The position numbers were made by a program, and so were the translations under genes. DNA of 64,000 nucleotides, taken from the IMG/VR virus record IMGVR_UViG_3300022935_000005, positions 1-64,000 of that record; one strand, given 5' to 3'. Shown one piece after another: positions 30,255 to 64,000 of the stretch. The stretch's first letter is position 1. Every line of letters begins with the position of its first letter. Below the pieces are notes generated by a model. That model did no database searches and was not told where the DNA came from. It was given only the letters and a program-made list of their open reading frames with translations.

Positions 30255-33200
30255 ATGGCAAAAGACTTTAGAGCAGACAGAATTAGAATAAAAGCTATTG
30301 TGGGCACAGGCTCTATTGCTAGCACAAAACCCCACCTCGGCTTGCTAATATACAGCTCCTCCATAGCATCTGACTGGAGAGGTAACGTCACTGATTCCGC
30401 CATACTATCTAATGTTGGTGATGACGTTTGGATGTTTGTAAGCGGAGCTGCCAATCCAGGACTTACAAGAGCTGATGGTTCTTCTGTTCTTTTCGGTGGA
30501 GATGTTGTTGTCAGTGGTACTCTTTGGGCTGAAAGAAGTGTCATTGAAGTGTCAGATACTGTTGTCGGTGACTTTAAGGTACCTAATAAGATCATACAGG
30601 GATACACTACGGATCCAACTACAGGTAAAGCGTTATTTCTCGCAGATCCCACAACCAGTAATAACGGAAGCAGCAACGGTGCTGGAAACATATCTTTTAA
30701 GATCGTCGACGGCGTAGCCGGAGCGTTCGCGTATCCCGACGACGGGTCAACGAACACAGACGTCTTTTTCCACGTGTCTGGTTCACGAGGAGTTAAGGGA
30801 ACGGATGATCGTGGTCTCGCTCTTTTCGATGGTGATGTCTTTATTTCTGGTAACTTTGAGCTGTCTCCAGAGTCTGCTTTCTCACTGGCGGGGGACTTCA
30901 CAATTGGTGGTGACCTAACCGTTGGTGGAAATGACATTCTCGGGTCCGCTGGTAATGCTCTGAGCTTCGGAGCCGTAGATCCTGATGTCACCATTACCAG
31001 AGGACTTAAAATAGGAAACGACGCCCTTACAGGGTCTGATGGTACGGTTTTTCTTGTTCACACTGGAGCGGGAAATACCGGAATATACGGTATGCTGCAA
31101 GTAGCTGGTAACGAAATCAAGAACTCTCAATGGGACACGGTCTTGAGGTTCTCAGAATATAGTGGAACTCCAGGTACTATATATGGTCAAGGGGTGGGAG
31201 GAAAGCCAGGGCCCTTATTGGGAGAAGTGTATATAACCGGTTCAGGAGTAGGGTATGGCGCCGCAGAGCTCTTCATTGATGGTGATCGAAAGCAGGGCGT
31301 TTTAAATCTTTCGAATATCAACGCTGGTATTTCAAGCGAGGACCCACTCGGAGTAATCAAGTTTGGCTCCAATAATGGAGGCTCAGGTCGTTCCGATGCA
31401 GCTTACATAGGTGCACGAGCAAAATCAACCTGGAGTACTGTACCAGATTTTAACACAGCGATTGAATTCTGGACAAGAGGAACTTCTGACAGCGGATTTG
31501 GACCCCCTAAGCTAAGAGCAACTATAGAAAACAACCCCAACGTCTCAGACAGGATTCAGCTCACGATTAGCGGAAACCTTAAGCTAGCTGACGGCCTCTC
31601 CCCTGGCGGTGGGAGTAGTTTTGGATCTAGTGTTCTTAGTGCTGATGATGTTGTTTCGTTCAGCGTTTTAGACAACGGAACAGTCCGCTTTTTTGAGGAC
31701 GCTATTATAGATAGTGATGTTTACATCGGCGGAAATCTAGACGTTAACGGTACGTTGACAACGATAGATACTGTAAACCTGCAAGTTAAGGATGCCCTAA
31801 TCGAGCTAGCTAGCGCTGGCGGAGGCGGTTCAAATAACACAAATGGCGGTATTGCAATTGCCAGTGGTTCTAGTATAAATGATGTATCTCTGGTGTTCGG
31901 GCGAGGTAGCGCAAATGATACGTGGCGCGCTGGTATAAAAGATACCGTTGAAGGAACTATAACTGATGTATCCGATTCTGAACCTGTTAGGGTAGAAATG
32001 GCTGGCGTCAGTATCCCAGCGACTGCACCCGGAGTTGGTTACCTGCTAATAACAGGTTCTGACAATGCTCTCGGTACCGTAACTCACTTAACAGCGTCGA
32101 CAGGAAACGGACTAGGTAGAGGCGGTATTCTGTTTAATCCAGGACCTAGCTATGGTACAACATTCAAAAATCAGATCAACTTAGACCCGGGTAATCAAAT
32201 CAATGCCGGTGACAATCCATTGATGGTTACCTCTGATGGAAATGATTTAAGCTTCTACGCTCCAGCCGGTTCATTCCAGGTACGGAATGTTCAGAGTCAA
32301 CTTGCGGGAGCAACTCCCGCTGATGATGACACTGATCTCCAGATTGGTATTCCCACAACTAAATTGAGGTCTGAGAGACTTGGATCTACATGGTTCTATG
32401 GTTCACAGCTTTTCGTTTCCGGTACTCATATTAACATAATAGCAGACAGACCAGCCGACGGCGGCGGGGGAAGTTACTTGAATAATATACCGGCACAAAG
32501 CATCGTTCTTAGTGCGTCTTCAGATGAGCAAGCCGGTGGAGCAGTTATAATTCTTAGCTCCAGTCAAGAATATGCTGGTGGACCGGGTAGCGGATTCGAA
32601 GGATTCATATCTATCGGTGGGAACCAAGCAGACGTCGATCGTGACTTTACCATGCTTCGACATCGGGACGTAAGGACACTATTGAGTGGAGCTGTTGGTA
32701 CAACCAACTCTAACACAAGAGGGGTTACCTTAGTCGGAGGTGACTTGGTTGTCTCTGGTAACACTGATTTTAAAGGCGCTGTTGCTATTGGTTCAATCTC
32801 TTCAGATAACTTGACACTCGCATCCGTGAGCTCAAATGAACCATATCTCAGATTTAGAGACAGTACTGTACAAATCAATAGAAGAACCGGAGATGACGCT
32901 TTAGTGTTTCTTGATGGTGACTTAGGTATATCTAAATCTCTTAGAGATCTGGCTTCCTTATCTGTCACTGACAATACTGACGTCTTTACAATCAGTGGTG
33001 GTGAACCATCGTACATAAAGACGACTGGCTCGTTCTCATTCGATTCAGATGATCAGTATACGACCGCTGTGAATGGCGGTAACTCAGATACATATTTCTA
33101 CGTTAGTGGATCAATAGGTTCTGCCGTCAAATCCTACCGACCAGCCAGCAACTTGGATAGAGGAACAGCAGTGTTCGGTGGTGATGTACACATATCTGGT

Positions 33201-33884: not shown

Positions 33885-33888
33885 GAAT

Positions 33889-36573
33889 ATGTCAATTTGG
33901 GTAACAGGATCTTTAGAAGTCAGAAACACATCAGGTGACCTCGTTTTCCAAGTAGGGGACAGCGCCGTTGCTAATCCAGATCCCACTCCTATGAACTTTA
34001 GATCCTCTATTGTCGAAGGGTCTTTTGAGGTTATTGGTGATCAGAATGTCAGCCATAAAATCCTTACAGCATCTTATGCTGGTGGCACTAACGGTGCCCG
34101 GGTTGGAGTAGGTGTAAGCGCAGAAACAAACGTAGCTTTCGCGGTAGGTGGAGACTTAGGATTAAGCGATACTTCTAGTGATCGCAGGATTGTAGTAGAG
34201 TCAGCTAGCGCTTTAGGAGATGCTTATATAAACGCTGGGTATGATAACAGTAACCGTCTTTTCATAATGTGGGAAGGTCAAGAAAAACGCATACGGATGG
34301 GTACCAGGGAAAGTGGTAGTACGTACTTCAGCTCTTTTATTATTAAATCTGGAAGCGCTGATTTACAAAACACTTTTACGGCCGGCGGAGATATAAAGGC
34401 TGGTGGTTCATTACAAGTCGGCGGTAATGTTATTCAAGCTTCAGACGGTGGAAACACCATCATCATGGATACGGATGATAACGTTACAATACGTGGTGAC
34501 TTAACAGTCAATGGTGGAGACATTCTTGGACCCACTGCCGGCCAATTAGCAATCAAGTCAGATGGTAATGCTATCATACAGGTTGATGCAGATAGCACCG
34601 GTGGAACCCCTGTTTTTGCTGTTTGGGATGAGTCTCAAAATCCCCAGTTTAGAGTACAGCTAAATGCTGCTGACGGCGGCACTAATAGCGTGACAACCAC
34701 ATATGGGCACGCCCATGTGGGAGAGAACTTAAACGTTACCGGATCTTTTGAGATGGGTAGTAGCGCAGTAGCCAACTTCGGCGCGGGTTCGACCCTAAAC
34801 TTTGGAGCGAACTCTTCTATTGATTGTGCTGCTTTCACTATTGACTCCACGTCAAACATAACGCTAGATTCTGACTTAAGTCAAATATACATCAAGGATA
34901 ACGGTGCTGATCGTTTCTCTTTCACCGCTGCTAACTTAAAAATACATAATGAGAGCAATACTTCAGACTATTTTGCTATTGATGTTGGAGCAAATGGGGC
35001 GACTACGCTGTCTACTGTCGATGATGGTGTCACTGCTACTGGTCACCTTTATGTAAATCCAGACGGTATCATACAACTACAACCGATCGGTGGAGTCAGG
35101 ATCGTTGGAACCAACCCTTACTTGAGAATTGGTGATGGTGGGGCAGAAGACGTTAAGGTTGAGTTTTATTATCAAGCAGCTGGTACTCTTTACTACCATG
35201 CCGGTGTGGATAATACTGACAGTATCTTCAAGATTGGACATGGGAATGTTCTTGGTACAGATTCAGCTATAGAGGTTGACACAACAACATCTGTTAACGT
35301 GAATCTTCCCATGACAGTTAATGACACGATCACTCTAGAGAATGGCGCAACAATAGGTAATGGAGTCTCAGGACGGATTGATCTTGCCGCCGCCACGACA
35401 CGCTTGAGTGGTGACTTACAAATTGCAGGAAACGACATCTTGAACAGCGGTGGTACCGCTGTGATGTCTATTAGCACTGGTAATGTCGTTGCCACCGCGG
35501 ATGTTGAGGCCCAGAACGTTCTAGCTGGAGGCTTGACTAGTACTAATTTGACTAGGGATAGAGTTGTGATTGCTGGGACTGGTGGTTTGCTAGATGATAG
35601 TGCTAACCTAACTTATACTACTAACAGACTAGCCATGGAGGGTGGCGGAACTCCATCAGTAGTGCTCATGTCAGATAGTACAAGTATGAATAATGGCGCC
35701 GGTTTGTACCTAAAGAGATATGTACCAAGTTCTACGACGCCTGCAGCAGGATATAACGTTGGTGAGCTAAACTTCCAAGCCTCCACCGATGATATTACAT
35801 ATCATGACGTCGCAAACGTTATAGTAGAGTTTTCTGAAACCTTCCAGCCAGCTACGGCGGAAGGAACTAGAATTGTTTTCAACTCCACGGCCAACGGAGC
35901 GACGTCGACCACTCAACACTTACAGGTCGGAGGTATGGATAATGCTCATGTTGCTGTTGGGTCTAATCCCCTAACAAATGGTGGTGGAAACGCAGGACTT
36001 TTAATTGGTGTTGGTTCCGGTAATGAAGCTAGATTAGACTTGATTGAGAACACTATTTCTACAACAGAAGGCTTTGGAACCGTTGGAGCTTACGGCTTCA
36101 GGGTGATGTACGATGGGACTGCTAATGACCTTATAATACAAAGCGGAGAGGCGACGAGCGTCGTCAATCGGATCATAGTTGATCGAGCCAGTGGGCTATT
36201 ACAGGTACCGTCGGTGTACACTTTATCCACCGCCTCCTCCGCGAATGTCAATGTCGATGTCGCCGGACAGATTAGAAGATCTACTTCCGACCGTAGAGTA
36301 AAGAAAGATATATCTGATTTGTCTGCTAGTCTCGATCAGGTGACAAGTCTTTTACCACGTCTGTTCTATGACATATCCGATGATACCAATAGTGTACATA
36401 TACCTGGGTTTGTAGCTGACGAAGTTGTTGATATTTTTCCAGAACTAGTCCCAGAAAGAAATGAGCCTGTAGAGATCACGAGGTCAGTATCTTATGACAG
36501 AGTGACAGCTTACATAGTTTCAGCGCTAAAAGAAGTAAAAGATAGATTAGAGGCTTTAGAAAGCTCTAACTAA
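33889..36573 (+). CDS. Tail fibre/spike with C-terminal intramolecular chaperone (peptidase S74)
   Basis: SDRRVKKDI, GFVADEV, VSYDRV, terminal coiled coil ALKEVKDRLEALE. Confidence 0.88.
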   Translation: MSIWVTGSLEVRNTSGDLVFQVGDSAVANPDPTPMNFRSSIVEGSFEVIGDQNVSHKILTASYAGGTNGARVGVGVSAETNVAFAVGGDLGLSDTSSDRRIVVESASALGDAYINAGYDNSNRLFIMWEGQEKRIRMGTRESGSTYFSSFIIKSGSADLQNTFTAGGDIKAGGSLQVGGNVIQASDGGNTIIMDTDDNVTIRGDLTVNGGDILGPTAGQLAIKSDGNAIIQVDADSTGGTPVFAVWDESQNPQFRVQLNAADGGTNSVTTTYGHAHVGENLNVTGSFEMGSSAVANFGAGSTLNFGANSSIDCAAFTIDSTSNITLDSDLSQIYIKDNGADRFSFTAANLKIHNESNTSDYFAIDVGANGATTLSTVDDGVTATGHLYVNPDGIIQLQPIGGVRIVGTNPYLRIGDGGAEDVKVEFYYQAAGTLYYHAGVDNTDSIFKIGHGNVLGTDSAIEVDTTTSVNVNLPMTVNDTITLENGATIGNGVSGRIDLAAATTRLSGDLQIAGNDILNSGGTAVMSISTGNVVATADVEAQNVLAGGLTSTNLTRDRVVIAGTGGLLDDSANLTYTTNRLAMEGGGTPSVVLMSDSTSMNNGAGLYLKRYVPSSTTPAAGYNVGELNFQASTDDITYHDVANVIVEFSETFQPATAEGTRIVFNSTANGATSTTQHLQVGGMDNAHVAVGSNPLTNGGGNAGLLIGVGSGNEARLDLIENTISTTEGFGTVGAYGFRVMYDGTANDLIIQSGEATSVVNRIIVDRASGLLQVPSVYTLSTASSANVNVDVAGQIRRSTSDRRVKKDISDLSASLDQVTSLLPRLFYDISDDTNSVHIPGFVADEVVDIFPELVPERNEPVEITRSVSYDRVTAYIVSALKEVKDRLEALESSN

Positions 36574-36716
36574 GAATTAACTTATATAATATATAGATTA
36601 ATAGTATTTAATAAGTAATAAGATTCAGTAATACAGTAGTTCAGTTATTCAGTTACAGAAATATATTAGCAGTCTTTCCAGAATTTGTACAAGCACTTTT
36701 CGAAAAAAACTTGACG

Positions 36717-36744: not shown

Positions 36745-36770
36745 TGATGGAGTAAGGTTAGAGGTCGTAT

Positions 36771-38720
36771 ATGTCAGTATTCAAAAGTCCATTTGAGCAA
36801 CAGCAGCCTTCTGTCAATTTGATCGATGACAGTACAGATGTGGTTGTAGTTGCAGATTTATTTGTAGAAGATTATGTCGGTGGTGCTGAGCTAACAACCG
36901 AAGCTCTAATTCAAGCCGCAAGTGATGTCAAGGTACAGAAGGTTTATGCTAGAGATGTAAGCATGGCAATGCTAAAGTCCGGGCATGGGAAGCATTGGGT
37001 TTTTTGTAACTCGACTTCTATGAATCCATCTCTTATTCCGACCATCATCGCTAACATGGAATATTCAATAATCGAATATGACTACAAGTTCTGTAAATTC
37101 AGAAGCATAGAGAAGCATGAGTTAGAGACTGGTACTCAATGCGACTGTCATGAAGATCTTCACGGTAAGATGATATCAGCTTTCTTCCATGGCGCAAAGA
37201 GCCTATGGTGGATGAGTGAAGATCAAGAAGCAAGATACTTAGCACGTTTTCCTTTCCTAAGAGAAAATGATTCAGTTGTGCTTAGCAGCGTTTTCGATGA
37301 TAGCTTCTTTGCATATGTCAACTCCGTGAAGTATGAAAATGAGAATCAAGACCGTCAGGGGTGGATTGTTCTCGGCTCAAATTCTTGGATCAAGGGGTTT
37401 GAAGATGCCGAGCAGCACTGTAAAGATAACGACTTGGAATACGAAGTCGTGTGGGGAGTTCCTCATGAAGAACTGCTTCAAAAGCTTTCTGCTGCTGAGG
37501 GTTTTGTGTATCTGCCTAAGGGAGGAGACACATGTCCAAGAATGGTTATCGAAGCCAAGGCTTTAGGATGCGAACTGGTCTTAAATGAGAACGTTCAGCA
37601 CGCTAATGAGGAGTGGTTCACTGGATCTGATATCGACATGCTGTCATATCTCTATGCAGCCCGCGAAAGATTTTGGAACGCAATCAAGTCTATCATGAAT
37701 TATACTCCTACACTTTCTGGCTATACCACTGTTAGGAACGCAAATCGTATGAAGTACCCTTGGCAGGCGACTGTAAGGTCCATGCTTGGCTTCTGTGATG
37801 AGGTAGTTGTTGTCGATGGTGGTTCCGATGACGATACATGGGAAGAACTACAGACCATGGCTCAGGGTCAGGAAGACGGACGTCTTAAAGTATACCAGCA
37901 TTCTGTTCCGAATGATCACCCCTCATTTGCGTATGAGACAGACGGTAAGCTAAAAGCTACAGCTAGAAGCTATTGTACAGGTGATTTCTGCTGGCAGATG
38001 GATGCCGATGAGATAGTCCACGAAAATGACTATCAAAAAGCTAGAAATGTCATGAAGGCTTTCCCACCACAGTTTGACATCATGTCGTTACCAGTTATCG
38101 AGTACTGGGGCGGTGACGAAAAAGTTCGTATGGATATCAATCCATGGAAGTGGCGGATAAGCAGAAACAAACCATATGTTACGCAAGGTATCCCGAGTGA
38201 ACTTCGAAGATGGGATGAAGAAGGTAACATATATGCTGCTTTAGGGACAGACACATGTGATTACATACACTCTGAGACAGGTGAAAGAATACCCCACGTC
38301 GGCTTCTACACTGAGGATGCGCATAGGGTTAGGCTAGCTGCTTTGATGGGTAATGATGAAGCGATGTCCGCATATCAAAACTGGTTCCAGCAGGTTGTAG
38401 ATCAGATTCCATCAGTTCACCACTATTCATGGTATGATATTTCTAAGAAGATTAAGCAGTACAAGCTTCATTGGGCATCATTCTGGAAAAGCCAGTATCG
38501 TCATGATGCAGAGGATACCACAGAGAACAATGTCATGTTTGATAAGCCGTGGAGCGAAGTAACTGATGAAGACATCGAAGCTTTAAGCAAAAGGTTGGCT
38601 TCTGAGTTAGGGGGGTGGATATTCCACACTAAAGTTGACTTCTCTGCGAATGTTCCTCATGTAACTCTTAATACAACTCATCCTGTAGAGTTCTTAAATT
38701 TACGAGAGAAAAATGAATAG
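36771..38720 (+). CDS. Two-domain glycosyltransferase (GT4-like plus GT2-like)
   Basis: GGAELT, DTCPRMVIEAKALGC; DEVVVVDGGSDDDT, QMDADE. Confidence 0.85.
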   Translation: MSVFKSPFEQQQPSVNLIDDSTDVVVVADLFVEDYVGGAELTTEALIQAASDVKVQKVYARDVSMAMLKSGHGKHWVFCNSTSMNPSLIPTIIANMEYSIIEYDYKFCKFRSIEKHELETGTQCDCHEDLHGKMISAFFHGAKSLWWMSEDQEARYLARFPFLRENDSVVLSSVFDDSFFAYVNSVKYENENQDRQGWIVLGSNSWIKGFEDAEQHCKDNDLEYEVVWGVPHEELLQKLSAAEGFVYLPKGGDTCPRMVIEAKALGCELVLNENVQHANEEWFTGSDIDMLSYLYAARERFWNAIKSIMNYTPTLSGYTTVRNANRMKYPWQATVRSMLGFCDEVVVVDGGSDDDTWEELQTMAQGQEDGRLKVYQHSVPNDHPSFAYETDGKLKATARSYCTGDFCWQMDADEIVHENDYQKARNVMKAFPPQFDIMSLPVIEYWGGDEKVRMDINPWKWRISRNKPYVTQGIPSELRRWDEEGNIYAALGTDTCDYIHSETGERIPHVGFYTEDAHRVRLAALMGNDEAMSAYQNWFQQVVDQIPSVHHYSWYDISKKIKQYKLHWASFWKSQYRHDAEDTTENNVMFDKPWSEVTDEDIEALSKRLASELGGWIFHTKVDFSANVPHVTLNTTHPVEFLNLREKNE

Positions 38721-40250: not shown

Positions 40251-40273
40251 AAAAAGAATAACGGAAGAAGAAT

Positions 40274-42159: not shown

Positions 42160-42160
42160 G

Positions 42161-42826: not shown

Positions 42827-42852
42827 AATGAGTCTAATGAAAGTGGTTTAAT

Positions 42853-55153: not shown

Positions 55154-56995
55154 ATGGCTAGCAACGTAGGAAAAGATGCGGTATCGGAATCGTTAGAGAC
55201 AAGATCTAGCGTAGCTGACGTCGTCCAACAGCAGGCCACGGCCAGTCCTACACAGACCTTACTTCGAGCTGTAGTGGTGGAAGTACTTTACGATTTAGCT
55301 GCCATACCAGATGAGGACATAGAGGAGCTCAAATCGCTAGTTAATGTTCCTGACTTGGTCGCCTCAGCACCACGAAATTCAATCATTGCGAGAGTTACCA
55401 CTGCCGGCGCTGACAAGAAAGCAGAAGTCGCGAGAGAACAAGTCACAGAGGAAGAACAGCAAAAAGCTGACGAAAACAAAGAGCCGGTTGAGGAAAAAGA
55501 CGCGATAGGGAAGGTAGGTATACTGGCTTATCCGTTCTTTCCACCTCATCTCTGCATGCCTCTCAAACCTGGAGAGCAAGTCTGGCTGGTCACTGAGTCT
55601 CCTGATACACCTTCTAAGATAATGTACTGGATGTGCAGAGTTACAGAGCCAGATCATATAGACGACATTAACTACACTCACTCAGACAGAAAATTTTCTG
55701 GATCACTCGCTCCAAAAACATCAAAGGAAAAAGCTGACGCAGCAACTGGTTCATCTGAAAAAACGGACACTTCACCATCAAGCTCTACAGGACAAGCTGA
55801 GGGAAAAAAAGAAACATTCGATAAGAATGAAGACGGAATAGATGATCGTATTTTTGGCTTTCCCAATGGAACCGGCGAGGCTGATGGTTACACTTTAGCA
55901 GAAGAGTTTGCTTACGAAGAGATTGTCAACTTGGCTTCCGCCTATAATCAGTTTCGTACTCAAGATGTGCCAAGATATACGAAACGTCCTGGTGACCTAG
56001 TGCTGCAAGGTTCAAACAATACTCTTATATGCTTAGGCGAAGAAAGAGGATGGCGCCACGATGACAGTCCGGCAGATAGCGAGACCTCAAACGCGACAGA
56101 GACAGAAGATCAGCTTACTGAGAAAAAAGATCACGTATGGGGAGCAATCGATATTGTTGCCGGACGTGGCAGGTACAACTGGAGAATGCTGGGTGAAGAA
56201 GTCGAAACTTCAACAAGCTCAGAGCCTCTAAGTCCATCCGCTCGCGTCATACTGAACTCTCCAGATGCAGACCAAGGCCGTGAAGCGTGGGTTGAAGTAA
56301 ACAAGAATCCTCAAGAGTCTGATAACGCAGAGGAGAACAGAAAGGATAACCCGACTGAAGGCGACCCGGATTTCTTTAGCGACGCTGCAAGAATAATAAT
56401 TTCTCATGGCTCTAAGACGGACGAAAACTTTAATATTGCGGAGATCGGTGCAACTCTTCCGACTCCTATCGGCGAATCGTTCGGTCAATACGATTTGGTG
56501 AACAAGGAAGGGGAGTATCCTTCTGCGATCACAACAAAGGCTGATGAGATAAGAGTCATAGCTCGTAAGCTTGAAGCAGGTTCACCTGTAGAAGGAGCAC
56601 CAGAAATTAATGGTTCTATACGGCTGGTTAAAGAGGGGACACCAGATGGTGATCTCGCCACCATCATGTTACTTCCTGACGGTACTGTACAGATAACTGG
56701 CTCTAGAATAGTACTAGGTCGGCATCCTGATGATGGTGGACTGGGTGCCGATAACAAGGGTCCAGGAGAGGGTAATTCTCAACCTTATGTGAAGTACCAG
56801 CAGCTAGAAGACTTGTTAACTGCGATGATGAAAGACGTGCAAACATTTTGTGATACAGTGTTGACTCACACAACACCTGGGTATGGTGCTCCATCAGTTC
56901 AATTGAATTCAGCTGCAAACGCATTAAAGGCTGCAATGTCTTCCCGTATAGGCGAAATACCAGACTTACAGTCTGAAAGAATATTCGGAGAATAG
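55154..56995 (+). CDS. Putative baseplate hub/central spike (gp5/VgrG-like)
   Basis: OB-like PLKPGEQVWLV..YW, PGDLVLQG; position upstream of gp25/gp6-like genes. Confidence 0.6.
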   Translation: MASNVGKDAVSESLETRSSVADVVQQQATASPTQTLLRAVVVEVLYDLAAIPDEDIEELKSLVNVPDLVASAPRNSIIARVTTAGADKKAEVAREQVTEEEQQKADENKEPVEEKDAIGKVGILAYPFFPPHLCMPLKPGEQVWLVTESPDTPSKIMYWMCRVTEPDHIDDINYTHSDRKFSGSLAPKTSKEKADAATGSSEKTDTSPSSSTGQAEGKKETFDKNEDGIDDRIFGFPNGTGEADGYTLAEEFAYEEIVNLASAYNQFRTQDVPRYTKRPGDLVLQGSNNTLICLGEERGWRHDDSPADSETSNATETEDQLTEKKDHVWGAIDIVAGRGRYNWRMLGEEVETSTSSEPLSPSARVILNSPDADQGREAWVEVNKNPQESDNAEENRKDNPTEGDPDFFSDAARIIISHGSKTDENFNIAEIGATLPTPIGESFGQYDLVNKEGEYPSAITTKADEIRVIARKLEAGSPVEGAPEINGSIRLVKEGTPDGDLATIMLLPDGTVQITGSRIVLGRHPDDGGLGADNKGPGEGNSQPYVKYQQLEDLLTAMMKDVQTFCDTVLTHTTPGYGAPSVQLNSAANALKAAMSSRIGEIPDLQSERIFGE

Positions 56996-57314: not shown

Positions 57315-57830
57315 GTGGTGGTGGAACAAGTTATGTCAATTGAACGAAGAGTAAATACAAAAACTTACAGTTTCAAATCTGTAGGGAATACAGCCGAGCT
57401 AAAGAAGAAGCTCGCGAACTCCGACCTACAGCGTCCACCTGTGGGTATAAAGACTCCCGTTGCTTTGTCTGAAAAGGGCGGAGCTTTTCTGGAAATGCAT
57501 GATAATTTTCCAGATCAGATACATGACAACTTATTGAACTTGATACTTTGTAACCATGGAGAAAGATTGGGACTACCTGACTTTGGAGCTAACCTGATGG
57601 AACTGACGTTCGAACTACAGGAATCAGATACTCAATCTGAAGCGATGTCTAGAATCAACTCTGCTGTTTCAAAGTACATGCCCTACGTTTCTTTAGAGAC
57701 GTTTACACCGATTATTGATCTGTTTGACAACAAAGAAGTCGCAAAGATCGGAGTCAATTTAGGCTACACCATACCTAAGCTTCGTACCGACCTTCGTCAA
57801 ATTGAGGTAATTTTGTATAGTGCAGGATGA
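57315..57830 (+). CDS. Baseplate wedge subunit, gp25/GPW family
   Basis: NLLNLILCNHGERLGLPDFGANL, AVSKYMPYV. Confidence 0.9.
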   Translation: MVVEQVMSIERRVNTKTYSFKSVGNTAELKKKLANSDLQRPPVGIKTPVALSEKGGAFLEMHDNFPDQIHDNLLNLILCNHGERLGLPDFGANLMELTFELQESDTQSEAMSRINSAVSKYMPYVSLETFTPIIDLFDNKEVAKIGVNLGYTIPKLRTDLRQIEVILYSAG

Positions 57831-57834
57831 TTGA

Positions 57835-59679
57835 ATGGCTATTGACGCAAAAAAACAATTAAAGAACGCGACGAAAAGAAATTATCTTGCAAGAGATTTT
57901 CAATCTTTTAGAAACGAGCTGTATTCACACGCAAAGCTTTTTTTCTCTGACAAGATACAGGACTTTACAGAGCCCGGGTTAGGGGGACTCTTACTAGACA
58001 TGGCTGCATATGTCGGCGACACCATGTCATTCTATCTAGATCATCAGTTCAACGAGTTAAACTGGTCAACAGCTATAGAGAATAGAAACATCAAGAGACA
58101 TCTTAGAAACGCAGGTGTTAAGGCTCGTGGCGCAAACCCAGCTGTCGCGATGATAAAGCTTTATTTTGAAGTGCCAGCAGAGACCGTCGACGACGAAATA
58201 ATACCTAAGAGAAATCTGCTTCCGATAGTCCAAGCGGCGACAACTTTCGTCTCTAAGGATGGTGTACCGTTTTCCCTAACTGCGGATGTTGATTTTTCTG
58301 AAAAAGATTCTGCTGGTAATTACCTGTATGACTCTATCGTTGTTGAAACAGATGATGACTCCAATCCTACTTCATTTGTGGTCGTAAGAAATGGTCTGGT
58401 GTTGTCTGGAATAAGAAAAGAGGAGCAATTTGCGATCTCTAACGTTTCTAAACCTTTTAGAAAGATTATCCTTCCTGATGAGAACATAACATCTATAATA
58501 AGCGTGAAAGATAGTGATGATAATCAATATTATGAAGTTGAATCGCTATCACAAGACACGGTATTTAAAAGAGTAGAAAACGTGTCTGTAGACCGAGACG
58601 ACGTTTCTCATAATTTAGAAGTCATACCAGCTCCCAGGAGATTTGTTTCATATTATGATTATGACACTAAGTTGACATCTTTACAATTCGGCTCCGGAGA
58701 CGCAACCACAACAGATAATGACTTGCTACCTGACCCATCTGAGTTAGCATTACCTCTTTACGGGAAGACTACTTTCACAAGATTTTCTTTAGATCCTAAC
58801 AAGCTAATGCAAACGCAGACCTTGGGAATATCACCGAGAAACACGACACTAACTGTAGCCTATAGAGCTGGTGGCGGATTAAAGCACAATGTAGCGGCAG
58901 ACATGATAAAGACTGTCACTAAGCTCTTCATAAAGTTTCCACAAAACGCAAGTGCCAGTGACTCCGCTCTTGTTAGGGCAAGTATAGATGTTACTAACCC
59001 TCTCCCGGCGATGGACGGAGATAGAGCGCCAACGCTTGAGGATTTGCGGTCGCAAATACCAGCTGCTAGAAACAGTCAGTCAAGAATCATTACAAAGCCT
59101 GATTTAATAGCGAGGATCTACACACTCCCCAATGAGTTTGGAAGAGTGTTTAGGGTCGGCATAAGACCCAACCCTATAAATTCTCTAGCCAGCCAGATCT
59201 TCGTGATTTCTAGATCAAGATCTGGAACTTTAAAAATGTCATCTGACACTTTGAAGAAAAACTTACGTACTTACTTAAACGAATTCCGAGCCGTTAGCGA
59301 TGCTTACGATATACTAGATGCTAGAATAATCAATTTTGGAGTACACATCGACGTAGTTGCCCATCCTGACTCAAACAAAGGTCAGGTTGCGCAAGGGATT
59401 ATATCAAACCTCACTAACCTTCTGGCACTGAAGAATATGCAAATAGATCAACCGATCGCATCTGCAGATATAATGAACTCAATATTAAACAGTGCCGGTG
59501 TGATATCGCTAATAGACTTTAGGGTGGTAAATCTTTCTGGCACGATAGAAGACAGAACTTATAGCGATGTCTCATTCAACGTCGACGCGAATACAATGCA
59601 ACGAATGGTGGTAGGTCAACCTGGATCGATATTTGAGCTGAAGTATCCAGCAAATGATATCGTGGTAACAGTGAGGTAA
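57835..59679 (+). CDS. Baseplate wedge subunit, T4 gp6/baseplate J-like
   Basis: YLARDFQSFR, AYVGDTMSFYLD, LQFGSG, QSRIITKPD. Confidence 0.88.
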   Translation: MAIDAKKQLKNATKRNYLARDFQSFRNELYSHAKLFFSDKIQDFTEPGLGGLLLDMAAYVGDTMSFYLDHQFNELNWSTAIENRNIKRHLRNAGVKARGANPAVAMIKLYFEVPAETVDDEIIPKRNLLPIVQAATTFVSKDGVPFSLTADVDFSEKDSAGNYLYDSIVVETDDDSNPTSFVVVRNGLVLSGIRKEEQFAISNVSKPFRKIILPDENITSIISVKDSDDNQYYEVESLSQDTVFKRVENVSVDRDDVSHNLEVIPAPRRFVSYYDYDTKLTSLQFGSGDATTTDNDLLPDPSELALPLYGKTTFTRFSLDPNKLMQTQTLGISPRNTTLTVAYRAGGGLKHNVAADMIKTVTKLFIKFPQNASASDSALVRASIDVTNPLPAMDGDRAPTLEDLRSQIPAARNSQSRIITKPDLIARIYTLPNEFGRVFRVGIRPNPINSLASQIFVISRSRSGTLKMSSDTLKKNLRTYLNEFRAVSDAYDILDARIINFGVHIDVVAHPDSNKGQVAQGIISNLTNLLALKNMQIDQPIASADIMNSILNSAGVISLIDFRVVNLSGTIEDRTYSDVSFNVDANTMQRMVVGQPGSIFELKYPANDIVVTVR

Positions 59680-59686
59680 ATAAAAC

Positions 59687-61240
59687 ATGTTCTATATCAT
59701 TACAGCTAGCTCTGATACATACATCACTGACAAAATCTTACAAAATAAATTTAGAGCCACCGACGCAAACGTAGGTAGGGCTGGCACTCTGGATCTGTTT
59801 AAGTTATATGATGAGTCGATATTCACGCAGAATGGAACCATAGTGACTAGTTCTGTCAGTGAGTTATCGAGAATACTGATTAAGTTTGATTATGAAAACT
59901 TAGTCTCTCTTACTTCAAGCAGTCTAGATCTGAATAGCGATACTTTTAAAGCCGAACTTCAATTAACAGAAGTTAATTCAGGTGTGCCGGTCCCTAGAGA
60001 TTTTTCCGTCATTGCCAATCCTCTAGCGGTGAAGTTTGATGAAGGTTCTGGAAAGAGTACTTCACAGTTTTCTGATGTCGATGTTGCAAACTTTATAACT
60101 GCTTCCGTAACTGCTGGAACACCTTCTCTATGGAATGTGACGGGCTCAGGCCAGGGTGGATATCTTAATTCTTCTGGTATCGACTATATCACTAGTGGCT
60201 CAATAGGCTCGGCGGAGATTGACTTTGGAGCTTCCAAGACTTTTGTTGAAGGACCCGGTAATCTGGTGTTAGACGTGACCAAGCAGGTCTCTTCATCATT
60301 AGCGAATGATATGGTCAATCACGGCTTCAGAATAGCTTTTAGCGGCTCCTACGAAAGCGACACTAAAACACGATTTGTGAAGAGGTTTGCTTCTAGACAT
60401 TCAAGAAATAGACTTCTTGTTCCAAGACTACTTTTGACCTGGGACAACTCAATCCAAGATCGGCATTTAGACCTACAGTTTAATGTGTCATCATCTTTGT
60501 TTTTAAAGAACTTCATTTCAGGACGTCCTGCAAATCTCGTCAGTGGGTCAGCGCTGACTGAACTAACAGGACAGAACTGTTTGAACCTGAGGTTCGTATC
60601 AGGATCAGGTACGATTACAGAGACGACGTTCAACGTATCTGTGTCTCAACATACTGGGTCGACAGACGGTTCTGGTATGGTAGGCGTATATTCTGGAACT
60701 TTTAACTTAGATGAGTTTAACACAACCTTCTTCGGTAATTCTACGAAATACGTCGATGAGATAGAGCTAAAAGAAATTTGGTCCTCTAATGATTTGACTG
60801 TTTCATTCTTTAGCGGTTCTGTGAAGATCAGAAAGGGTTCTAGAAGCACAGCGGGATTTTCTAATAGAAGATTACATGTTTCTGTTGTGAATGCACAGAC
60901 GGCATACAGGGAAGGTGATGAAGCGAGTTTTAGACTATTCGTAGAGGACCTCGACAAGACACTAAATGAGAAAGCCTATAAGCTTCCTAGAAGAAGAACA
61001 AGCGAGGTATTTGATGTTGCTCATTATAGACTTGTAGACAAAGAAACAGGCACAATCATCGTTCCATTCGACAAGATAAGAAATTCAACTCGCGTTTCAA
61101 CAGACGCGGATGGAATGTATATTTCGTTCTTGACAGCTGGTCTTCCAAAGGGCCGGACGTACACTATACATCTTTTAGTAAATGACCGAGGTATCGAGAG
61201 GTTGTTCAGTCTAGATGATATATCTTTCACGGTGGTATAA
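59687..61240 (+). CDS. Virion structural protein
   Basis: DTYI, RILIKFD, KRFASR..PRLLLTWD; in baseplate cluster. Confidence 0.75.
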   Translation: MFYIITASSDTYITDKILQNKFRATDANVGRAGTLDLFKLYDESIFTQNGTIVTSSVSELSRILIKFDYENLVSLTSSSLDLNSDTFKAELQLTEVNSGVPVPRDFSVIANPLAVKFDEGSGKSTSQFSDVDVANFITASVTAGTPSLWNVTGSGQGGYLNSSGIDYITSGSIGSAEIDFGASKTFVEGPGNLVLDVTKQVSSSLANDMVNHGFRIAFSGSYESDTKTRFVKRFASRHSRNRLLVPRLLLTWDNSIQDRHLDLQFNVSSSLFLKNFISGRPANLVSGSALTELTGQNCLNLRFVSGSGTITETTFNVSVSQHTGSTDGSGMVGVYSGTFNLDEFNTTFFGNSTKYVDEIELKEIWSSNDLTVSFFSGSVKIRKGSRSTAGFSNRRLHVSVVNAQTAYREGDEASFRLFVEDLDKTLNEKAYKLPRRRTSEVFDVAHYRLVDKETGTIIVPFDKIRNSTRVSTDADGMYISFLTAGLPKGRTYTIHLLVNDRGIERLFSLDDISFTVV

Positions 61241-61242
61241 GA

Positions 61243-64000
61243 ATGTCAAGAAAAAAGAACGTTTTCTCAAACCAAAAGTTGTTTACACCAGCTGTTGTAA
61301 GAAAATATACAAAATCGTCTGGAGTCTTAAAAGAACAGACATTGGGCTCTGTCTCTGGATCAAAGGAGGTTAATGATACTCCGTCTGGGTCATTCCGTTA
61401 TGATCCTCCAGGGTCTCCCCTTAAGTCATCGCAACAGCTTCCTTTAGATTTTTCGAAGTTTGAAAATCACACGTTCTTTTCTTCTGCTGAGGTAAACGTT
61501 AATTTAGCGTACGAAAAAATTATTAACAAGTTTCCGTTTGACGGAACAAAGAAAGAGTACGAAGACTGGCTTGATGACCTATCAGGATTTGAGAAGTACA
61601 TTTTAGATATATACCCATCATATACCGGCTATCTGACCTTTCATGGTAACAATGAGTATGTGGAAGTCATAGATAAAGCAGGTGTTATATTTCCTTCTAT
61701 CTCTAAGAAGGTATCTGCCAAGACTGTCTTGAACCCCCGCTCAAATCCAATTTTTATTGAGCTAGACTTGGCAATACCTAGCGAAGCATCTAATGACCAA
61801 TACATCTTATATCATAATTCGAATAATGATGTTGGGTATGCTGCATTCACAAGAGCATCAACATCGAGCTCTAAAGCTGATCTAACATTCACAGTCTTTA
61901 GTGGGTCGACTACTGCATCTGCAACAACTGAGATTGAAAAGGGTAGCTTTACCCACGTCTGTCTCTCTTATGATAACTCTATACAGGAGAAGAGAGCAAA
62001 GATATTGTCTGGAAGTGTTGTTGTCGCAACCTCGGATAGGGTATCTTTTGATTCAATTAGTACTGCGGGAAATTCGTTACTGATCGGATCAGGCTCAACT
62101 TTAGCAATCAGTAGCTTTACGCCAACTCAAACGTTTTCAGGGTCAATCAATAACTTTAGAGTATACCATAAGACAAGAACATCATCTGAAATTGACCGCT
62201 ATATAAAAAGGACTCTTTTTGCCGACAGTAACAGCATGAACGTCTTAAACTTAAGGTTTAATGAGGCAACGGGAAGCTATCAAAACAATTCAGTTGTTTT
62301 AGATTCTTCTGGTGAGAGTTTACACTCCAGGATTGTCAACTACGACGCCGGAATACGCTCTGAAAAGCCTTACGACAGTTTATGCTTATTTGAAAGTTCT
62401 GTATATCATCCTACGCTGTTTCCAAGTCATCCTGACGTCATTTCTTTAAACGAGCAGTTGTTGGTTAGCGCTTCTAACTATGATGCCAATAACCCTAACT
62501 TGATAACAAAGCTTATTCCTGATCATTACTTTGAAGTTGCAAAAGCCTCAACTGGACAAAGCGATTATGGCACAACCTTGAACGGTATAGAACAATCACC
62601 TGACGCATATTCTGTTCCTGGCGCAGCCAAGATGGGACAACCACAGATCATATCAGCTCTGTTGTTTATGTGGGCCAGAATGTTCGACGAATTAAAGCAA
62701 ATGATCGATCATGCATCTGAACTAGTTCATATAGACTATGAATCAGAGGAATCGATAGCGAACCAGCTTTTACCAATGTTATCTGAGTATTACGGTTTTG
62801 AGCTTTCTAGCATGTTTAGGAACGCAAGTTATGACCAATTCTTTGACGGTGAATCTATAGTTGCTGGGAAAGTACCGGGCCTTCTGGCACTACAGAACGA
62901 AATATGGCGTAGAATATTAATTAATCTACCTGAGATTGTACGATCGAAAGGGACACTGCATAGTATAAAATCCCTATTTAGATCCGCCGGTATCGATCCG
63001 GATAGGATGTTTCGATTCGTTGAGTACGGGAGTGAAAACCAACTTCGGCTCGGCCGGTCAAGAAAAAAGATAACAGAAATATCGACGTTACTAGATTTTT
63101 CGGGAAGTATCTCCTACACTCCCTCTGCTACAACAGACGTACAGGGATACAACAGCAACAAGCCAAACCTAATATCTTCTTTCTTGACTGGGTCTAGGAT
63201 AGAAGTCGGTTATCCTGACATTTCTGGAGTAATGATACAACAGGAAGAGTATTCTCCACACGGCATATCCAACTCTGAAAATGACGGCTTGTTCACATCC
63301 GGAAGCTGGTCGATAGAAAGTAGATTTAAGTTTCCTACAACTAGAAATTTTTATGATCCACAAAGTCTTTTACGACTACACACAACTGGATCGTCTGTAT
63401 CGCACAACGTGATTGTGAACTTGGTAGCAGACCCCAATATTGACGAAGATGCCGAGAATGGAATAGTGACGCTGTATTGCCGACCCGGCTTTGAAACCTC
63501 AGATGATCTATTAACTCTCTCTATTAATGATGTCAACATCTTCGACGGAAATAAATGGTACGTATCCGCGGGAAGAAAGAGAAATGATGAGATAGACAGC
63601 TATGTGTCATCAAGCTACTTTCTGACTCTTGCCAGACAAGAGAATGGCGAGATACTGGAATATTACACAACATCGTCTTTGTTCTTGGACTCAAATGTCG
63701 TTGGAGAAAATGCGTTCCAAAAGAAAGATTATCTTGGCACGACGCTGAACGCATCAGGCTCTTTCATAGTGGTTGGAAGCCAGACACTAGACGACTCTAT
63801 TTCTCGCCACTTAAATGATAGCACAATAGTTGAAAAAGCTAGAACAACAAACTTTTCTGGGCTAATGGGTCACACAAGGTTTTGGTCGAAAGCCTTGACA
63901 CAAGAAGAAATGAAAGAACACACGAGGAACTTTACTTCTTTGGGTGTAGAAGACCCTCTAAAGAACTTCGGTTTTTCTCATGAGATCACTGGTTCATTCG
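61243..64000 (+). CDS. Large virion/baseplate protein with LamG-like domains (3'-truncated by window end)
   Basis: Partial hand translation, open wherever checked: DFSKFENHTFFSSA, FSGSINNFRVY, EIWRRILINLP..SKGT, GHTRFWSKAL; absent from ORF track, consistent with no stop in the window. Confidence 0.85.
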   Translation, partial: MSRKKNVFSNQKLFTPAVVRKYTKSSGVLKEQTLGSVSGSKEVNDTPSGSFRYDPPGSPLKSSQQLPLDFSKFENHTFFSSAEVNVNLAYEKIINKFPFDGTKKEYEDWLDDLSGFEKYILDIYPSYTGYLTFHGNNEYVEVIDKAGVIFPSISKKVSAKTVLNPRSNPIFIELDLAIPSEASNDQYILYHNSNNDVGYAAFTRASTSSSKADLTFTVFSGSTTASATTEIEKGSFTHVCLSYDNSIQEKRAKILSGSVVVATSDRVSFDSISTAGNSLLIGSGSTLAISSFTPTQTFSGSINNFRVYHKTRTSSEIDRYIKRTLFADSNSMNVLNLRFNEATGSYQNNSVVLDSSGESLHSRIVNYDAGIRSEKPYDSLCLFESSVYHPTLFPSHPDVISLNEQLLVSASNYDANNPNLITKLIPDHYFEVAKASTGQSDYGTTLNGIEQSPDAYSVPGAAKMGQPQIISALLFMWARMFDELKQMIDHASELVHIDYESEESIANQLLPMLSEYYGFELSSMFRNASYDQFFDGESIVAGKVPGLLALQNEIWRRILINLPEIVRSKGTLHSIKSLFRSAGIDPDRMFRFVEYGSENQLRLGRSRKKITEISTLLDFSGSISYTPSATTDVQGYNSNKPNLISSFLTGSRIEVGYPDISGVMIQQEEYSPHGISNSENDGLFTSGSWSIESRFKFPTTRNFYDPQSLLRLHTTGSSVSHNVIVNLVADPNIDEDAENGIVTLYCRPGFETSDDLLTLSINDVNIFDGNKWYVSAGRKRNDEIDSYVSSSYFLTLARQENGEILEYYTTSSLFLDSNVVGENAFQKKDYLGTTLNASGSFIVVGSQTLDDSISRHLNDSTIVEKARTTNFSGLMGHTRFWSKALTQEEMKEHTRNFTSLGVEDPLKNFGFSHEITGSF

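Follow-up and report, generated by a model that had tools for sequence, protein, structure and literature searches.

The DNA analysed here, referred to as the window, is a stretch of 64,000 nucleotides corresponding to positions 1 to 64,000 of the IMG/VR record IMGVR_UViG_3300022935_000005, a marine phage genome of 280,913 bp. Between positions 30,255 and 64,000, two tail-fibre genes and a baseplate block enclose a cluster encoding eight glycosyltransferases, two sulfotransferases and a GDP-fucose-type pathway, as assigned by Pfam (Table). This gene content is as stated in the first-pass annotation, which had been made from the sequence alone.

Table. Features of the locus and of other genome regions referred to in the text. 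Positions are those of the window unless marked as genome positions. Strict and loose sites are defined in the text.
Position	Strand	Gene	Assignment and supporting evidence
22480-24408			PrkA/YeaG-like kinase, with YeaH- and SpoVR-like partners
30255-33884	+	g48	1209-aa tail-fibre-like protein; 8 strict (12 loose) sites; no Pfam or PHROG hit; contains the fibre-type VTGSLYPGADNTYDLG segment
33889-36573	+	g49	894-aa tail fibre with C-terminal Peptidase_S74 intramolecular chaperone (PF13884); PHROG long tail fibre distal subunit; 2 strict (4 loose) sites
36771-41476	+	g50-g53	Four GT2-family glycosyltransferase genes (g50 36771-38720, g51 38713-39495, g52 39492-40250, g53 40274-41476; PF00535, PF10111, PF13641); variable part of the glycan island; one motif site in total
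41473-43449	+	g54-g56	g54, unknown, weak hit to a carbohydrate-cluster 2OG-Fe oxygenase; g55 (42161-42826), short DegT-like, 221 aa, short-form homologues in phage immuto and LR756511; g56, unknown
43460-44332	+	g57	GT10-type (fucosyl)transferase (PF00852)
44348-45719	+	g58, g59	Two sulfotransferases (PF00685/PF13469 and PF03567)
45850-46779	+	g60	GDP-L-fucose-synthase-like epimerase/reductase (PF01370; NCBIfam GDPFucSynFcl, 270 bits, below its cut-off)
46776-47552	+	g61	GT11-type, alpha-1,2-fucosyltransferase-like (PF01531)
47537-48715	+	g62	DegT/RfbH/PseC-like PLP-dependent sugar aminotransferase or dehydratase (PF01041; NCBIfam)
48754-49734	+	g63	GDP-mannose 4,6-dehydratase (PF16363, E 1.7e-127)
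50326-51204	+	g65	PD-(D/E)XK nuclease (PF12705); first gene of the conserved triad; adjacent to the GT4 pair in relatives and in phages immuto and Mel-JY01
51284-52549	+	g66	Retaining GT4 glycosyltransferase with intact EX7E motif; core gene of the clade and best-conserved gene of the block
52552-53727	+	g67	Second GT4, of a virus-only lineage; predicted partner of g66
54037-54771	+	g69	gp55-like late sigma factor (PHROG 234)
55154-56995	+	g71	613-aa unknown protein in the baseplate block
57315-59679	+	g73, g74	gp25-like (g73) and gp6-like (g74) inner baseplate wedge proteins (Pfam, PHROG)
59687-61240	+	g75	517-aa all-beta multi-domain outer baseplate protein with carbohydrate-binding-module-like N-terminal domain; 5 strict (11 loose) sites
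61243-64000	+	g76	1169-aa protein running on to genome position 64752, with ConA-like/Laminin_G_3 domain; 7 strict sites
111193-113106 (genome)			Major capsid protein; no strict and one loose site
161991-163013 (genome)			Divergent thymidylate-synthase-family ORF, next to the DNA polymerase gene

Profile searches of the whole genome with PF02397, PF00953 and PF01943 returned no initiating undecaprenyl-phosphate transferase (Bac_transf or WecA/MraY type) and no Wzx-type flippase, and no polytopic membrane protein lies in the cluster. The locus therefore does not correspond to a Wzx/Wzy-type O-antigen or capsule gene cluster. The GDP-mannose dehydratase g63, the GDP-fucose-synthase-like g60 and the GT11-type g61 are 52%, 40% and 33% identical to proteins of cyanophage P-SSM2, whose LPS-like cluster is the closest found and which also has GT2 genes. 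The fucose, sulfotransferase and GT2 part looks like a variable island, and glycan islands of differing content abut the GT4 pair in this phage, in Flavobacterium phage immuto and in Microcystis phage Mel-JY01.

A short motif enriched in outer virion proteins

The first-pass annotation had noted that VSGS, ITGS and similar tetrapeptides recur in the fibres and in the proteins at 59687 and 61243 but apparently not in the enzymes. This observation was confirmed. Counting the loose motif [VILFMYW][ST][GAS]S against per-protein shuffles gave 12 observed vs 2.3 expected for g48, 4 vs 1.5 for g49, 11 vs 1.1 for g75 and 9 vs 2.2 for g76, while the 18 enzymes g50-g67 together have 1 vs about 2.9. Almost all of the signal was found to reside in Gly at position 3 and Ser at position 4. 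In the fibre and baseplate proteins the strict form PHI-[S/T]-G-S, where PHI is V, I, L, F, M, Y or W, was observed 71 times vs 8.5 expected (8.4x over composition shuffles, z 23), and PHI-[S/T]-G-S-PHI was 17x enriched. In contrast, Ala or Ser at position 3 gave only 1.6x and 2.0x, respectively, and T, D, N, A or G at position 4 gave 1-2.2x. The motif is hence narrower than first proposed.

Enrichment by Ser/Gly/Thr content alone, which had been named beforehand as a possible refutation, is ruled out, since shuffling within windows of 10-40 residues, together with collapsing of tandem repeats, still gave 6.7-8.3x with z 18-23. The repeats concerned are those of a 2417-aa fibre encoded beyond the window, which are roughly 80 aa long and contain three sites each; removal of redundant contexts likewise left the signal. 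Out of the 24 possible orders of the four residue classes this one is the commonest, with 68 instances against a median of about 10. A word acting at the DNA level, such as a restriction, methylation or recombination site, was rejected because the codons are diverse: 86 instances use 59 different 9-mers and both Ser codon families. Selection therefore acts on the protein.

The motif is short and largely independent of context, 87 of 102 instances having unrelated flanks. It occurs in fibres, in a beta-sandwich baseplate protein and in insertions of the tail sheath, and in the predicted structure of g75 the sites fall into several kinds of secondary structure. Among g75 homologues the Ser at position 4 is kept in 0.80, against 0.52 for all Ser, whereas S and T interchange at position 2. 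Only some virion proteins carry the motif. Over homologues at 41-84% identity the enrichment is 12.7x for g75, 9.5x for g76, 5x for g71 and 5.6x for g77, but 0.39x for the gp6-like and 0.6x for the gp25-like inner baseplate proteins, and about zero for the enzymes.

These properties have to be weighed against a purely structural motif, i.e. a short beta-strand or tight-turn element (hydrophobic in, hydroxyl out, Gly for packing) reused by the fibre, spike and beta-sandwich domain families of this clade, with the glycosyltransferases acting on something else. In favour of it, many sites form period-6 tandem arrays (PHI-T-G-S-x-x-PHI-S-G-S) in fibre shafts, and these arrays as well as 'FSGSFxGDGSGLTGI'-type shaft segments occur in annotated tail spikes and fibres; a structural repeat would look the same. 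Hydrophobic residues are favoured on both flanks, and several sites lie within or at the C-terminal end of predicted beta strands. On the other hand, the motif is independent of fold and flanks, the strong preference for Ser over Thr, Asp or Asn at position 4 is unusual for a turn, and the motif is absent from T4 and phiKZ fibres and from the inner baseplate proteins of the same virion. Sequence searches of the PDB with motif-rich fibre segments and of cultured phages with g75 found no homologues, and an alignment of sheath proteins was uninformative as to whether the motif positions are structurally obligatory, as the sites lie in insertion domains that cannot be aligned. We consider the structural explanation less likely than not, although it remains possible.

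Distribution of the motif and of the GT4 pair

The enrichment is not a general property of phage fibres. T4 (0.79x) and phiKZ (0.89x) show none, and six other phages score 1.1-1.7x (S-PM2 1.6x, P-SSM2 1.7x, Ma-LMM01 1.5x, phiYS40 1.3x, KVP40, of which part was analysed, 1.6x, and LR756511 1.2x), although the mild 1.5-2x seen in fibres of other marine myoviruses, including cyanomyoviruses, would also fit a structural element. The motif instead marks one deep clade of distant T4 relatives, with 4.2x in this phage, 4.85x in immuto, 4.3x in Rhodothermus phage RM378 and 3.3x in Mel-JY01. Among the tail-spike and fibre proteins of immuto, immuto35A_169 has 20 sites. All 39 of 39 further metagenomic loci were positive (370 observed vs 42.9 expected). 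It is retained across hosts from three phyla and across very different genome G+C contents, which, like the coincidence of its loss with that of g67 described below, speaks against a purely structural motif.

The genes tracking the motif are the adjacent GT4 genes g66 and g67 rather than the whole cluster. The g67 family is present in every motif-positive complete or near-complete genome, namely this phage, immuto, Mel-JY01, RM378 (weakly, 29 bits) and a 197-kb genome (G002), and is absent from every motif-negative genome. g66 is one of only three genes of this phage with BLASTP hits in all three cultured in-group phages (immuto, Mel-JY01 and RM378) and none in T4, S-PM2, P-SSM2 or phiKZ; P-SSM2 also lacks g67. 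In every relative of this lineage with enough flanking sequence the pair is syntenic with the baseplate block, and no relative without the pair was found among roughly 30 such loci. The contrast came from a more distant phage, LR756508, which nests with immuto and Mel-JY01 in the TerL, MCP and DnaB trees. It keeps g66 but lacks g67, and shows no enrichment: 1.14x for the whole proteome and 1.47x in 28.9 k residues of its structural region, with no sites in its 1400-aa g76 homologue. The comparative link rests on one clade plus a single independent co-loss, with shared ancestry confounding the rest. Moreover, the virion proteins of LR756508 have a much lower S/T/G content (0.14-0.20 against 0.26-0.38), suggesting different domain types, and on the structural view this phage would simply have swapped its outer virion domains.

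The stop and start codons of g66 and g67 often overlap, as in translationally coupled genes, and both families keep GT4 catalytic signatures, which in the g67 family comprise R-K and E-G-x-G-L-P-x-L-[E/D]. Structure prediction of the pair indicated a heterodimer with an ipSAE of 0.88 against 0.01 for the best control. That mark was reached by 58 of 80 solved complexes and 2 of 110 mismatched pairs, counts which hold only roughly because our own alignments were used.

Two other roles for the cluster were considered. First, the glycosyltransferases may serve DNA hypermodification, the nuclease and GT4 pair acting on a hydroxymethylated base, or the fucose and sulfotransferase island may remodel host LPS or capsule as in cyanophage LPS-like clusters, the virion motif being unrelated. 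In the three cultured relatives the nuclease-GT4-GT4 triad lies in replication modules, the thymidylate-synthase-family ORF of this genome scores far below the family cut-offs (110 bits against 327), and both fit DNA glycosylation equally well. g67 also marginally passes the Pfam model for GT4 in conflict systems, the 33-52% identity of g60, g61 and g63 to the P-SSM2 cluster likewise speaks for this reading, and DNA, host serotype and virion are all listed as possible targets of the core glycosyltransferases of aquatic jumbo phages (PMC12619734). However, Mel-JY01 and RM378 have no thymidylate-synthase-family gene, so a hydroxymethyl-pyrimidine route is not universal in the clade; export and initiating enzymes are not encoded, although host enzymes could supply these steps; and both the motif and its co-distribution with g67 are left unexplained. 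A role on DNA or host glycans is therefore unlikely but not excluded. Second, the motif may be recognised by something other than a glycosyltransferase, for instance for Ser phosphorylation by the PrkA-like kinase or another modification, by an assembly chaperone, or as a host-surface ligand. A conserved hydroxyl is indeed required at positions 2 and 4. Yet the kinase and its two partners are not among the genes found in all three cultured in-group phages and do occur in the motif-negative LR756511, and no other candidate enzyme tracks the motif. We regard this as the least likely explanation.

With respect to expression, the T4 late-promoter word TATAAATA is not enriched, and a candidate word, ATATTTA(A), precedes some structural genes but none of the cluster genes.

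A putative sequon for virion O-glycosylation

The best-supported reading, held tentatively and without biochemical support, is that PHI-[S/T]-G-S(-PHI) is a recognition site for O-glycosylation of outer virion proteins, i.e. tail fibres, tailspike-like proteins, outer baseplate proteins and the surface insertion domains of the sheath, carried out in the cytoplasm before or during assembly. The g66/g67 pair would be the likely core enzyme, acting as a heterodimer and attaching the first sugar or sugars to a Ser/Thr hydroxyl presumed to be displayed on or at the end of a beta strand, the small Gly giving access. In this phage the neighbouring variable island could then extend and decorate that glycan. 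What the analysis itself establishes is the motif with its specificity and conservation, its restriction to outer virion proteins, a distribution across phages matching that of g67, the prediction of a g66-g67 complex, and the absence of export machinery. That the motif is modified at all, that the modification is a glycan, which residue carries it, and that the island acts on the same acceptor are inferred; literature searches on phage fibre O-glycosylation and on RM378 glycosylation found nothing relevant, and no chemical evidence of a glycan on any virion protein of this clade was encountered. The interpretation of the first-pass annotation, a cytoplasmic system coating the virion with a sulfated deoxy-sugar glycan at a defined sequon, is thus only partly supported, the sulfated deoxy-sugar coat being no more than a reading of gene content.

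Virion glycosylation by virus-encoded enzymes has precedents. In mycobacteriophages, phage-encoded cytoplasmic glycosyltransferases of variable content reportedly decorate the phage's own structural proteins (Freeman et al., 2023, Cell Host Microbe 31:1216, cited in PMC12619734). There the glycans are reported to sit on C-terminal extensions of capsid and tail-tube subunits, and no compact sequon is reported, whereas here the candidate sites form a 4-5-residue motif scattered through fibres, spikes, outer baseplate proteins and sheath insertions, with no strict site in the major capsid protein, and the phages are distant T4 relatives of Gram-negative and cyanobacterial hosts. In chloroviruses, cytosolic virus-encoded glycosyltransferases modify the capsid independently of the host at non-canonical sequons, but the glycans are N-linked and the host is eukaryotic. 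The nearest solved structure to the g66 family is the chlorovirus NY-2A glycosyltransferase B736L (E 1e-11, near full length), a similarity at the level of the GT4 family to an enzyme without a known acceptor.

The predicted heterodimer resembles the GtfA-GtfB O-GlcNAc transferase of streptococci and staphylococci, in which two adjacent GT-B-fold proteins form a complex and O-glycosylate Ser residues of a fibrous surface protein, the serine-rich-repeat adhesin, in the cytoplasm; g66 also resembles UDP-GlcNAc-using retaining GT4 enzymes such as BshA and MshA. However, GtfB is non-catalytic whereas the g67 family keeps its signature, Pfam found no DUF1975 insert, similarity to Gtf1 is marginal (E 0.05), and the substrate would be a discrete motif, not a long Ser-rich repeat. 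The autotransporter heptosyltransferases TibC/AAH hyperglycosylate Ser in the cytoplasm on the folded, repetitive beta-solenoids of AIDA-I/TibA and recognise a short strand-loop-strand motif, but belong to a different, GT9-like family, and Pfam detected no such domain in the cluster. The general O-glycosylation of Bacteroidota uses the sequon D-[S/T]-[A/I/L/V/M/T] and periplasmic transfer of a flipped lipid-linked glycan, whereas the enriched motif here is PHI-[S/T]-G-S and no flippase or initiating transferase is encoded. 'Moraphages', aquatic jumbo phages of up to 307 kb with predicted Bacteroidota hosts, have four glycosyltransferase orthogroups in their core genome (PMC12619734); no motif is reported for them.

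In its widest form, for which our confidence is somewhat lower still, a widespread clade of aquatic myoviruses with hosts in Bacteroidota, Rhodothermota and Cyanobacteria, including jumbo marine phages, would write a glycan coat on its fibres, spikes and outer baseplate at a defined linear sequon by means of a virus-specific heterodimeric GT4 enzyme, with lineage-variable islands diversifying the glycan, in this phage by fucose or deoxy-sugar and sulfate. This would be the first compact O-glycosylation sequon for a phage, and could be read directly from sequence in hundreds of metagenomic genomes; the existence of three cultured relatives makes the idea directly testable. Even if the motif proves structural, it is a strong, clade-specific signature of outer virion proteins, useful for annotating the many unnamed fibre and baseplate genes of these phages. 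If it is a sequon, glycosylated virion surfaces would be common in aquatic phages and not a peculiarity of mycobacteriophages, and the modified sites could be predicted from sequence alone. The receptor-binding organelles themselves would be glycan-coated, which bears on host recognition, on adhesion to marine polysaccharide gels, on resistance to proteases and on grazing, and the variable islands would then be a second axis of phage diversification.

Genome setting and the glycan gene cluster

The window is the first 64 kb of an IMG/VR virus record that is linear, 280,913 bp long and rated 92% complete by CheckV. A simple greedy gene call gave 358 ORFs, mostly on the + strand. PHROG and Pfam scans showed a distant T4 relative, a myovirus, encoding a gp55-like late sigma factor, gp25-like and gp6-like baseplate wedge proteins, terminase, portal, a gp23-type major head protein and two tail-sheath paralogues, as well as UvsX, DnaB, RNR, DNA polymerase, PhoH and a PrkA/YeaH/SpoVR trio. 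The latter comprises SpoVR-like, YeaH-like and PrkA/YeaG-like serine-kinase genes and represents an auxiliary gene set; the kinase also matches Thermus phages, Ralstonia phage RsoM2USA and huge uncultured phages. The first 12 kb differ from the rest of the window in G+C content (0.50–0.55 against about 0.40). This stretch encodes an AAA_5/MoxR-like ATPase and a DUF2201 metallopeptidase/VWA-like protein, while its remaining ORFs have no family hit, and it could be a foreign island or an assembly join.

The gene inventory of the first-pass annotation, which had placed about eight glycosyltransferase genes, two sulfotransferases and sugar-modifying enzymes between virion protein genes, is correct. 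Two fibre genes (g48 and g49, the latter with a Peptidase_S74 C-terminus) are situated upstream and the baseplate block is situated downstream. Between them lie four GT2 genes, a GT10, a GT11 and two GT4 genes, together with two sulfotransferases, GDP-mannose 4,6-dehydratase, a GDP-fucose-synthase-like reductase, two DegT-type PLP enzymes and a PD-(D/E)XK nuclease. One of the DegT-like ORFs (221 aa) looks truncated, but is conserved as a short form in Flavobacterium phage immuto (44% identity) and in the phage LR756511 (50%), and is therefore probably a functional short protein and not a fragment. No Bac_transf, WecA/MraY-type or Wzx family was found in the whole genome, and no multi-span membrane protein lies in the cluster.

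Two upstream elements were found in the course of these analyses. Over the whole genome, the word ATATTTA(A) is about 12x over-represented in upstream gaps and is positioned 10–75 nt (mostly 24–46 nt) before 14 genes, several of them structural. It may be the late promoter, but it does not precede the glycan-cluster genes. In addition, a near-identical element of about 30 nt, CTGTGGTATTATATAAATGA[A/T]GGTGGGGA, lies 51–63 nt upstream of three genes and looks like a shared promoter or regulatory site.

Coordinates of the features (window positions unless marked as genome; L006, L008 and L010 are stretches of this genome, L261 is a stretch of Microcystis phage Mel-JY01)
Position	Feature
1-12000	stretch of elevated G+C
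4949-6034	AAA_5/MoxR-like ATPase
6421-7821	DUF2201 metallopeptidase/VWA-like protein
3405-3435; 6366-6396; genome about 252796	30-nt element (downstream gene starts at 3468, 6421 and 252847)
11326, 11981, 29495 (examples)	ATATTTA(A) word
19997-24408	SpoVR-like, YeaH-like and PrkA/YeaG-like trio
30255-33884	fibre gene g48
33889-36573	fibre gene g49
42161-42826	short DegT-like ORF
55154 onward	baseplate block
genome 72332-79585	2417-aa fibre
genome 92591-94586 (L006:14591-16586)	g88 and g89
genome 116849-123134 (L008:2849-9134), outside the window	two adjacent tail-sheath paralogues
genome 161991-163013 (L010:11991-13013)	divergent thymidylate-synthase-family ORF
L261:3065-4591	motif-rich structural protein of Mel-JY01
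L261:4750-8430	1226-aa protein of Mel-JY01 with a g67-like GT4 domain

A strict Ser-Gly-Ser motif in outer virion proteins

The observation of a recurrent motif made in the first-pass annotation was confirmed, although the motif is sharper than proposed there. With per-protein shuffles, the loose form [VILFMYW][ST][GAS]S was observed 185 times genome-wide against 84 expected, concentrated in the fibre g48, in the baseplate-block proteins g75 and g76, and in the large proteins just beyond the window. Dissection showed that h[ST]GS, h being hydrophobic, accounts for 71 observed versus 8.5 expected instances in the fibre and baseplate set (8.4x, z 23), reaching 17x with a following hydrophobic residue. 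Ala or Ser at position 3 gave only 1.6–2x, and Thr, Asp, Asn, Ala or Gly at position 4 gave 1–2.2x.

The 2417-aa fibre holds roughly 80-aa tandem repeats with three sites each. Even so, 87 of 102 strict instances have unrelated ±15-residue contexts, and after these repeats were collapsed and shuffling was confined to 10–40-residue windows, the enrichment was still 6.7–7.6x (z 18–20). Of the 24 orders of the four residue classes this order is the commonest (68), followed by the same sites read one residue later (56), the median being about 10. The 86 instances in proteins with two or more sites use 59 different 9-mers and both Ser codon families, close to background usage; hence, the constraint is on the protein and not on the DNA. 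Outside the core there is only a modest hydrophobic preference at −3 to −1 and at +4.

The motif is carried by fibres (g48, g49, g79, g80), by outer baseplate-block proteins (g71, g75–g78, g89, g90), by the insertion domains of the two sheath paralogues and by a few small structural candidates. The adjacent sheath paralogues, with 1062 and 1020 aa, are much longer than the 659-aa T4 sheath, and their strict sites lie in variable, unalignable regions. In contrast, the gp6-like and gp25-like wedge proteins, portal, terminase, the capsid protein and all 18 enzymes of the cluster are non-carriers.

The g75 family has at least 1124 members in marine metagenomes and at least 595 IMG/VR loci. In an alignment of 60 sequences reaching down to 43% identity, the position-4 Ser of the eleven sites is kept in 0.80 of sequences, against 0.52 for all Ser, while position 2 alternates between S and T, and position 3 among G, S and A. 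Over homologues at 41–84% identity, strict-motif enrichment was 12.7x for g75 (254 observed versus 20 expected), 9.5x for g76, 5.6x for g77 and 5.1x for g71, whereas it was 0.39x for the gp6-like g74 and 0.6x for the gp25-like g73. The GT4 enzyme g66 showed 0 observed versus 1.3 expected, the GT4 enzyme g67 1.1x, and the PD-(D/E)XK nuclease g65 showed 0 observed. An AlphaFold model of g75 (pLDDT 81, pTM 0.80) is an all-beta, multi-domain protein with an N-terminal domain resembling a carbohydrate-binding module. In this model the motif sites lie in mid-strand, at strand ends, in loops and in two short helices, so that there is no single structural context. However, sites inside strands, together with period-6 arrays in fibre shafts, support the main rival reading, namely a structural motif, which is judged to be rather unlikely.

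Distribution of the motif and of a GT4 gene pair

The same gene caller and shuffle were applied to other phages, showing that the motif is not a generic fibre feature. Among large S/T/G-rich proteins alone, T4 scores 0.6x, the two cyanomyoviruses about 1.9x and this phage 8.2x.

Strict-motif ratio (observed to expected) over whole proteomes
Phage	Ratio
This phage	4.2x
Flavobacterium phage immuto	4.85x (z 16.5)
Rhodothermus phage RM378	4.3x
Microcystis phage Mel-JY01	3.3x
T4	0.79x
phiKZ	0.89x
S-PM2	1.6x
P-SSM2	1.7x
Ma-LMM01	1.5x
phiYS40	1.3x
KVP40 (part)	1.6x
LR756511	1.2x
LR756508	1.14x

By capsid protein, the nearest cultured relatives are Mel-JY01, immuto and RM378, plus two uncultured huge phages. 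Homologues of g66 were found in Mel-JY01, immuto, RM378 and LR756508 but not in LR756511; weaker GT4 hits occur in a few unrelated phages. In immuto and Mel-JY01 the triad PD-(D/E)XK – g66 – g67 is adjacent and is followed by other glycan genes, while RM378 has the GT4 pair. The three cultured phages, the hosts of which come from three phyla, show the same motif enrichment, concentrated in proteins annotated as tail spike or tail fibre. Besides g66, only g88 and g89 among the genes of this phage have BLASTP hits in all three cultured in-group phages and none in T4, S-PM2, P-SSM2 or phiKZ; they have no family annotation and are probably clade-specific structural proteins. Thirty-nine further, diverse IMG/VR loci recovered with the gp6-like protein are all motif-positive downstream of gp6 (370 observed versus 42.9 expected), and the one complete genome among them has g67.

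Profile and six-frame HMM scans placed the g67 family in this phage, immuto, Mel-JY01 and, weakly, RM378, and in none of the motif-negative genomes. The informative case is LR756508, which shares 51 proteins with this phage and groups with immuto and Mel-JY01 in the TerL, capsid and DnaB trees, i.e. inside the motif-positive clade. It keeps g66 and two PD-(D/E)XK genes but has no g67. It also has no motif enrichment, with 1.47x over 28.9 k residues of its structural region against 7.3–9.1x in its relatives, and no sites in its 1400-aa g76 homologue. This is a single independent co-loss and is suggestive, not proof.

g66 is the best-conserved gene of the block (58–74% identity, where g75 is 41–66%). 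It keeps the GT4 EX7E motif and its phosphate-binding residues, resembles the BshA, MshA and TreT retaining GT4 enzymes and, as a profile, matches the chlorovirus NY-2A glycosyltransferase B736L best among solved structures. g67 belongs to clusters that are essentially all viral, and its family keeps E-G-x-G-L-P-x-L-[E/D]. The two ORFs often overlap stop and start, and a complex prediction with controls supports binding (ipSAE 0.88 against a best control of 0.01). This mark was reached by 58 of 80 solved complexes and 2 of 110 mismatched pairs, counts which hold only roughly because our own alignments were used. A g67-like GT4 domain is also contained in a 1226-aa protein of Mel-JY01 annotated as FkbM methyltransferase, directly after a motif-rich structural protein and with a cytidylyltransferase-like gene nearby.

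In the remainder of the island, g60 (GDP-fucose-synthase-like), g61 (GT11) and g63 (GDP-mannose 4,6-dehydratase) are 33–52% identical to genes of the LPS-like cluster of cyanophage P-SSM2, a phage that lacks g66 and g67 and has only weak motif enrichment. Immuto and Mel-JY01 carry different glycan genes next to their GT4 pair, namely aminotransferases, methyltransferases, an acetyltransferase and other glycosyltransferases. The fucose and sulfate part is therefore a variable add-on, and a host-glycan role for the island remains possible. Similarly, a DNA-glycosylation role for the GT4 pair is kept alive by the location of the triad among replication genes in the cultured relatives, by its nuclease neighbour and by a divergent thymidylate-synthase-family ORF of this genome. 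This ORF, next to the DNA polymerase gene, scores far below the thymidylate synthase cut-offs and is a possible pyrimidine hydroxymethylase, which would imply modified DNA. The host-glycan and DNA roles, taken together, are considered doubtful.

A candidate O-glycosylation sequon

The motif is short, independent of fold, needs hydroxyls and is confined to the outer parts of the virion; it is conserved over a deep clade with hosts in three phyla and disappears together with one glycosyltransferase. All of this is most simply read as a modification sequon, with O-glycosylation by g66/g67 as the modification, a reading that we favour only tentatively. Another modification or a ligand is possible but improbable. 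The enrichment, conservation and distribution of the motif are results of the sequence analyses, whereas modification of the sites, its nature as a glycan and the action of the island on the same acceptor as g66/g67 are inferred, no biochemical evidence having been found in the material examined. The proposal of a virion glycosylation sequon in the first-pass annotation is thus supported in part, and the cultured relatives make it directly testable.

Functionally, the putative system resembles mycobacteriophage virion glycosylation, the GtfA-GtfB system and the autotransporter heptosyltransferases. It fails defining features of each, these being the target proteins and sites, a non-catalytic partner with a DUF1975 insert, and the GT9 family, respectively. 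It does not match the Bacteroidota D-[S/T]-x sequon or a Wzx/Wzy cluster. No description of this motif was found in the literature searched, and a paper on ‘moraphages’ (PMC12619734) notes core glycosyltransferases in aquatic jumbo phages, leaving their target open. Glycosylation of phage virions is in itself known; if the present reading is true, what is new would be a sequence-readable sequon and a virus-specific two-subunit GT4.
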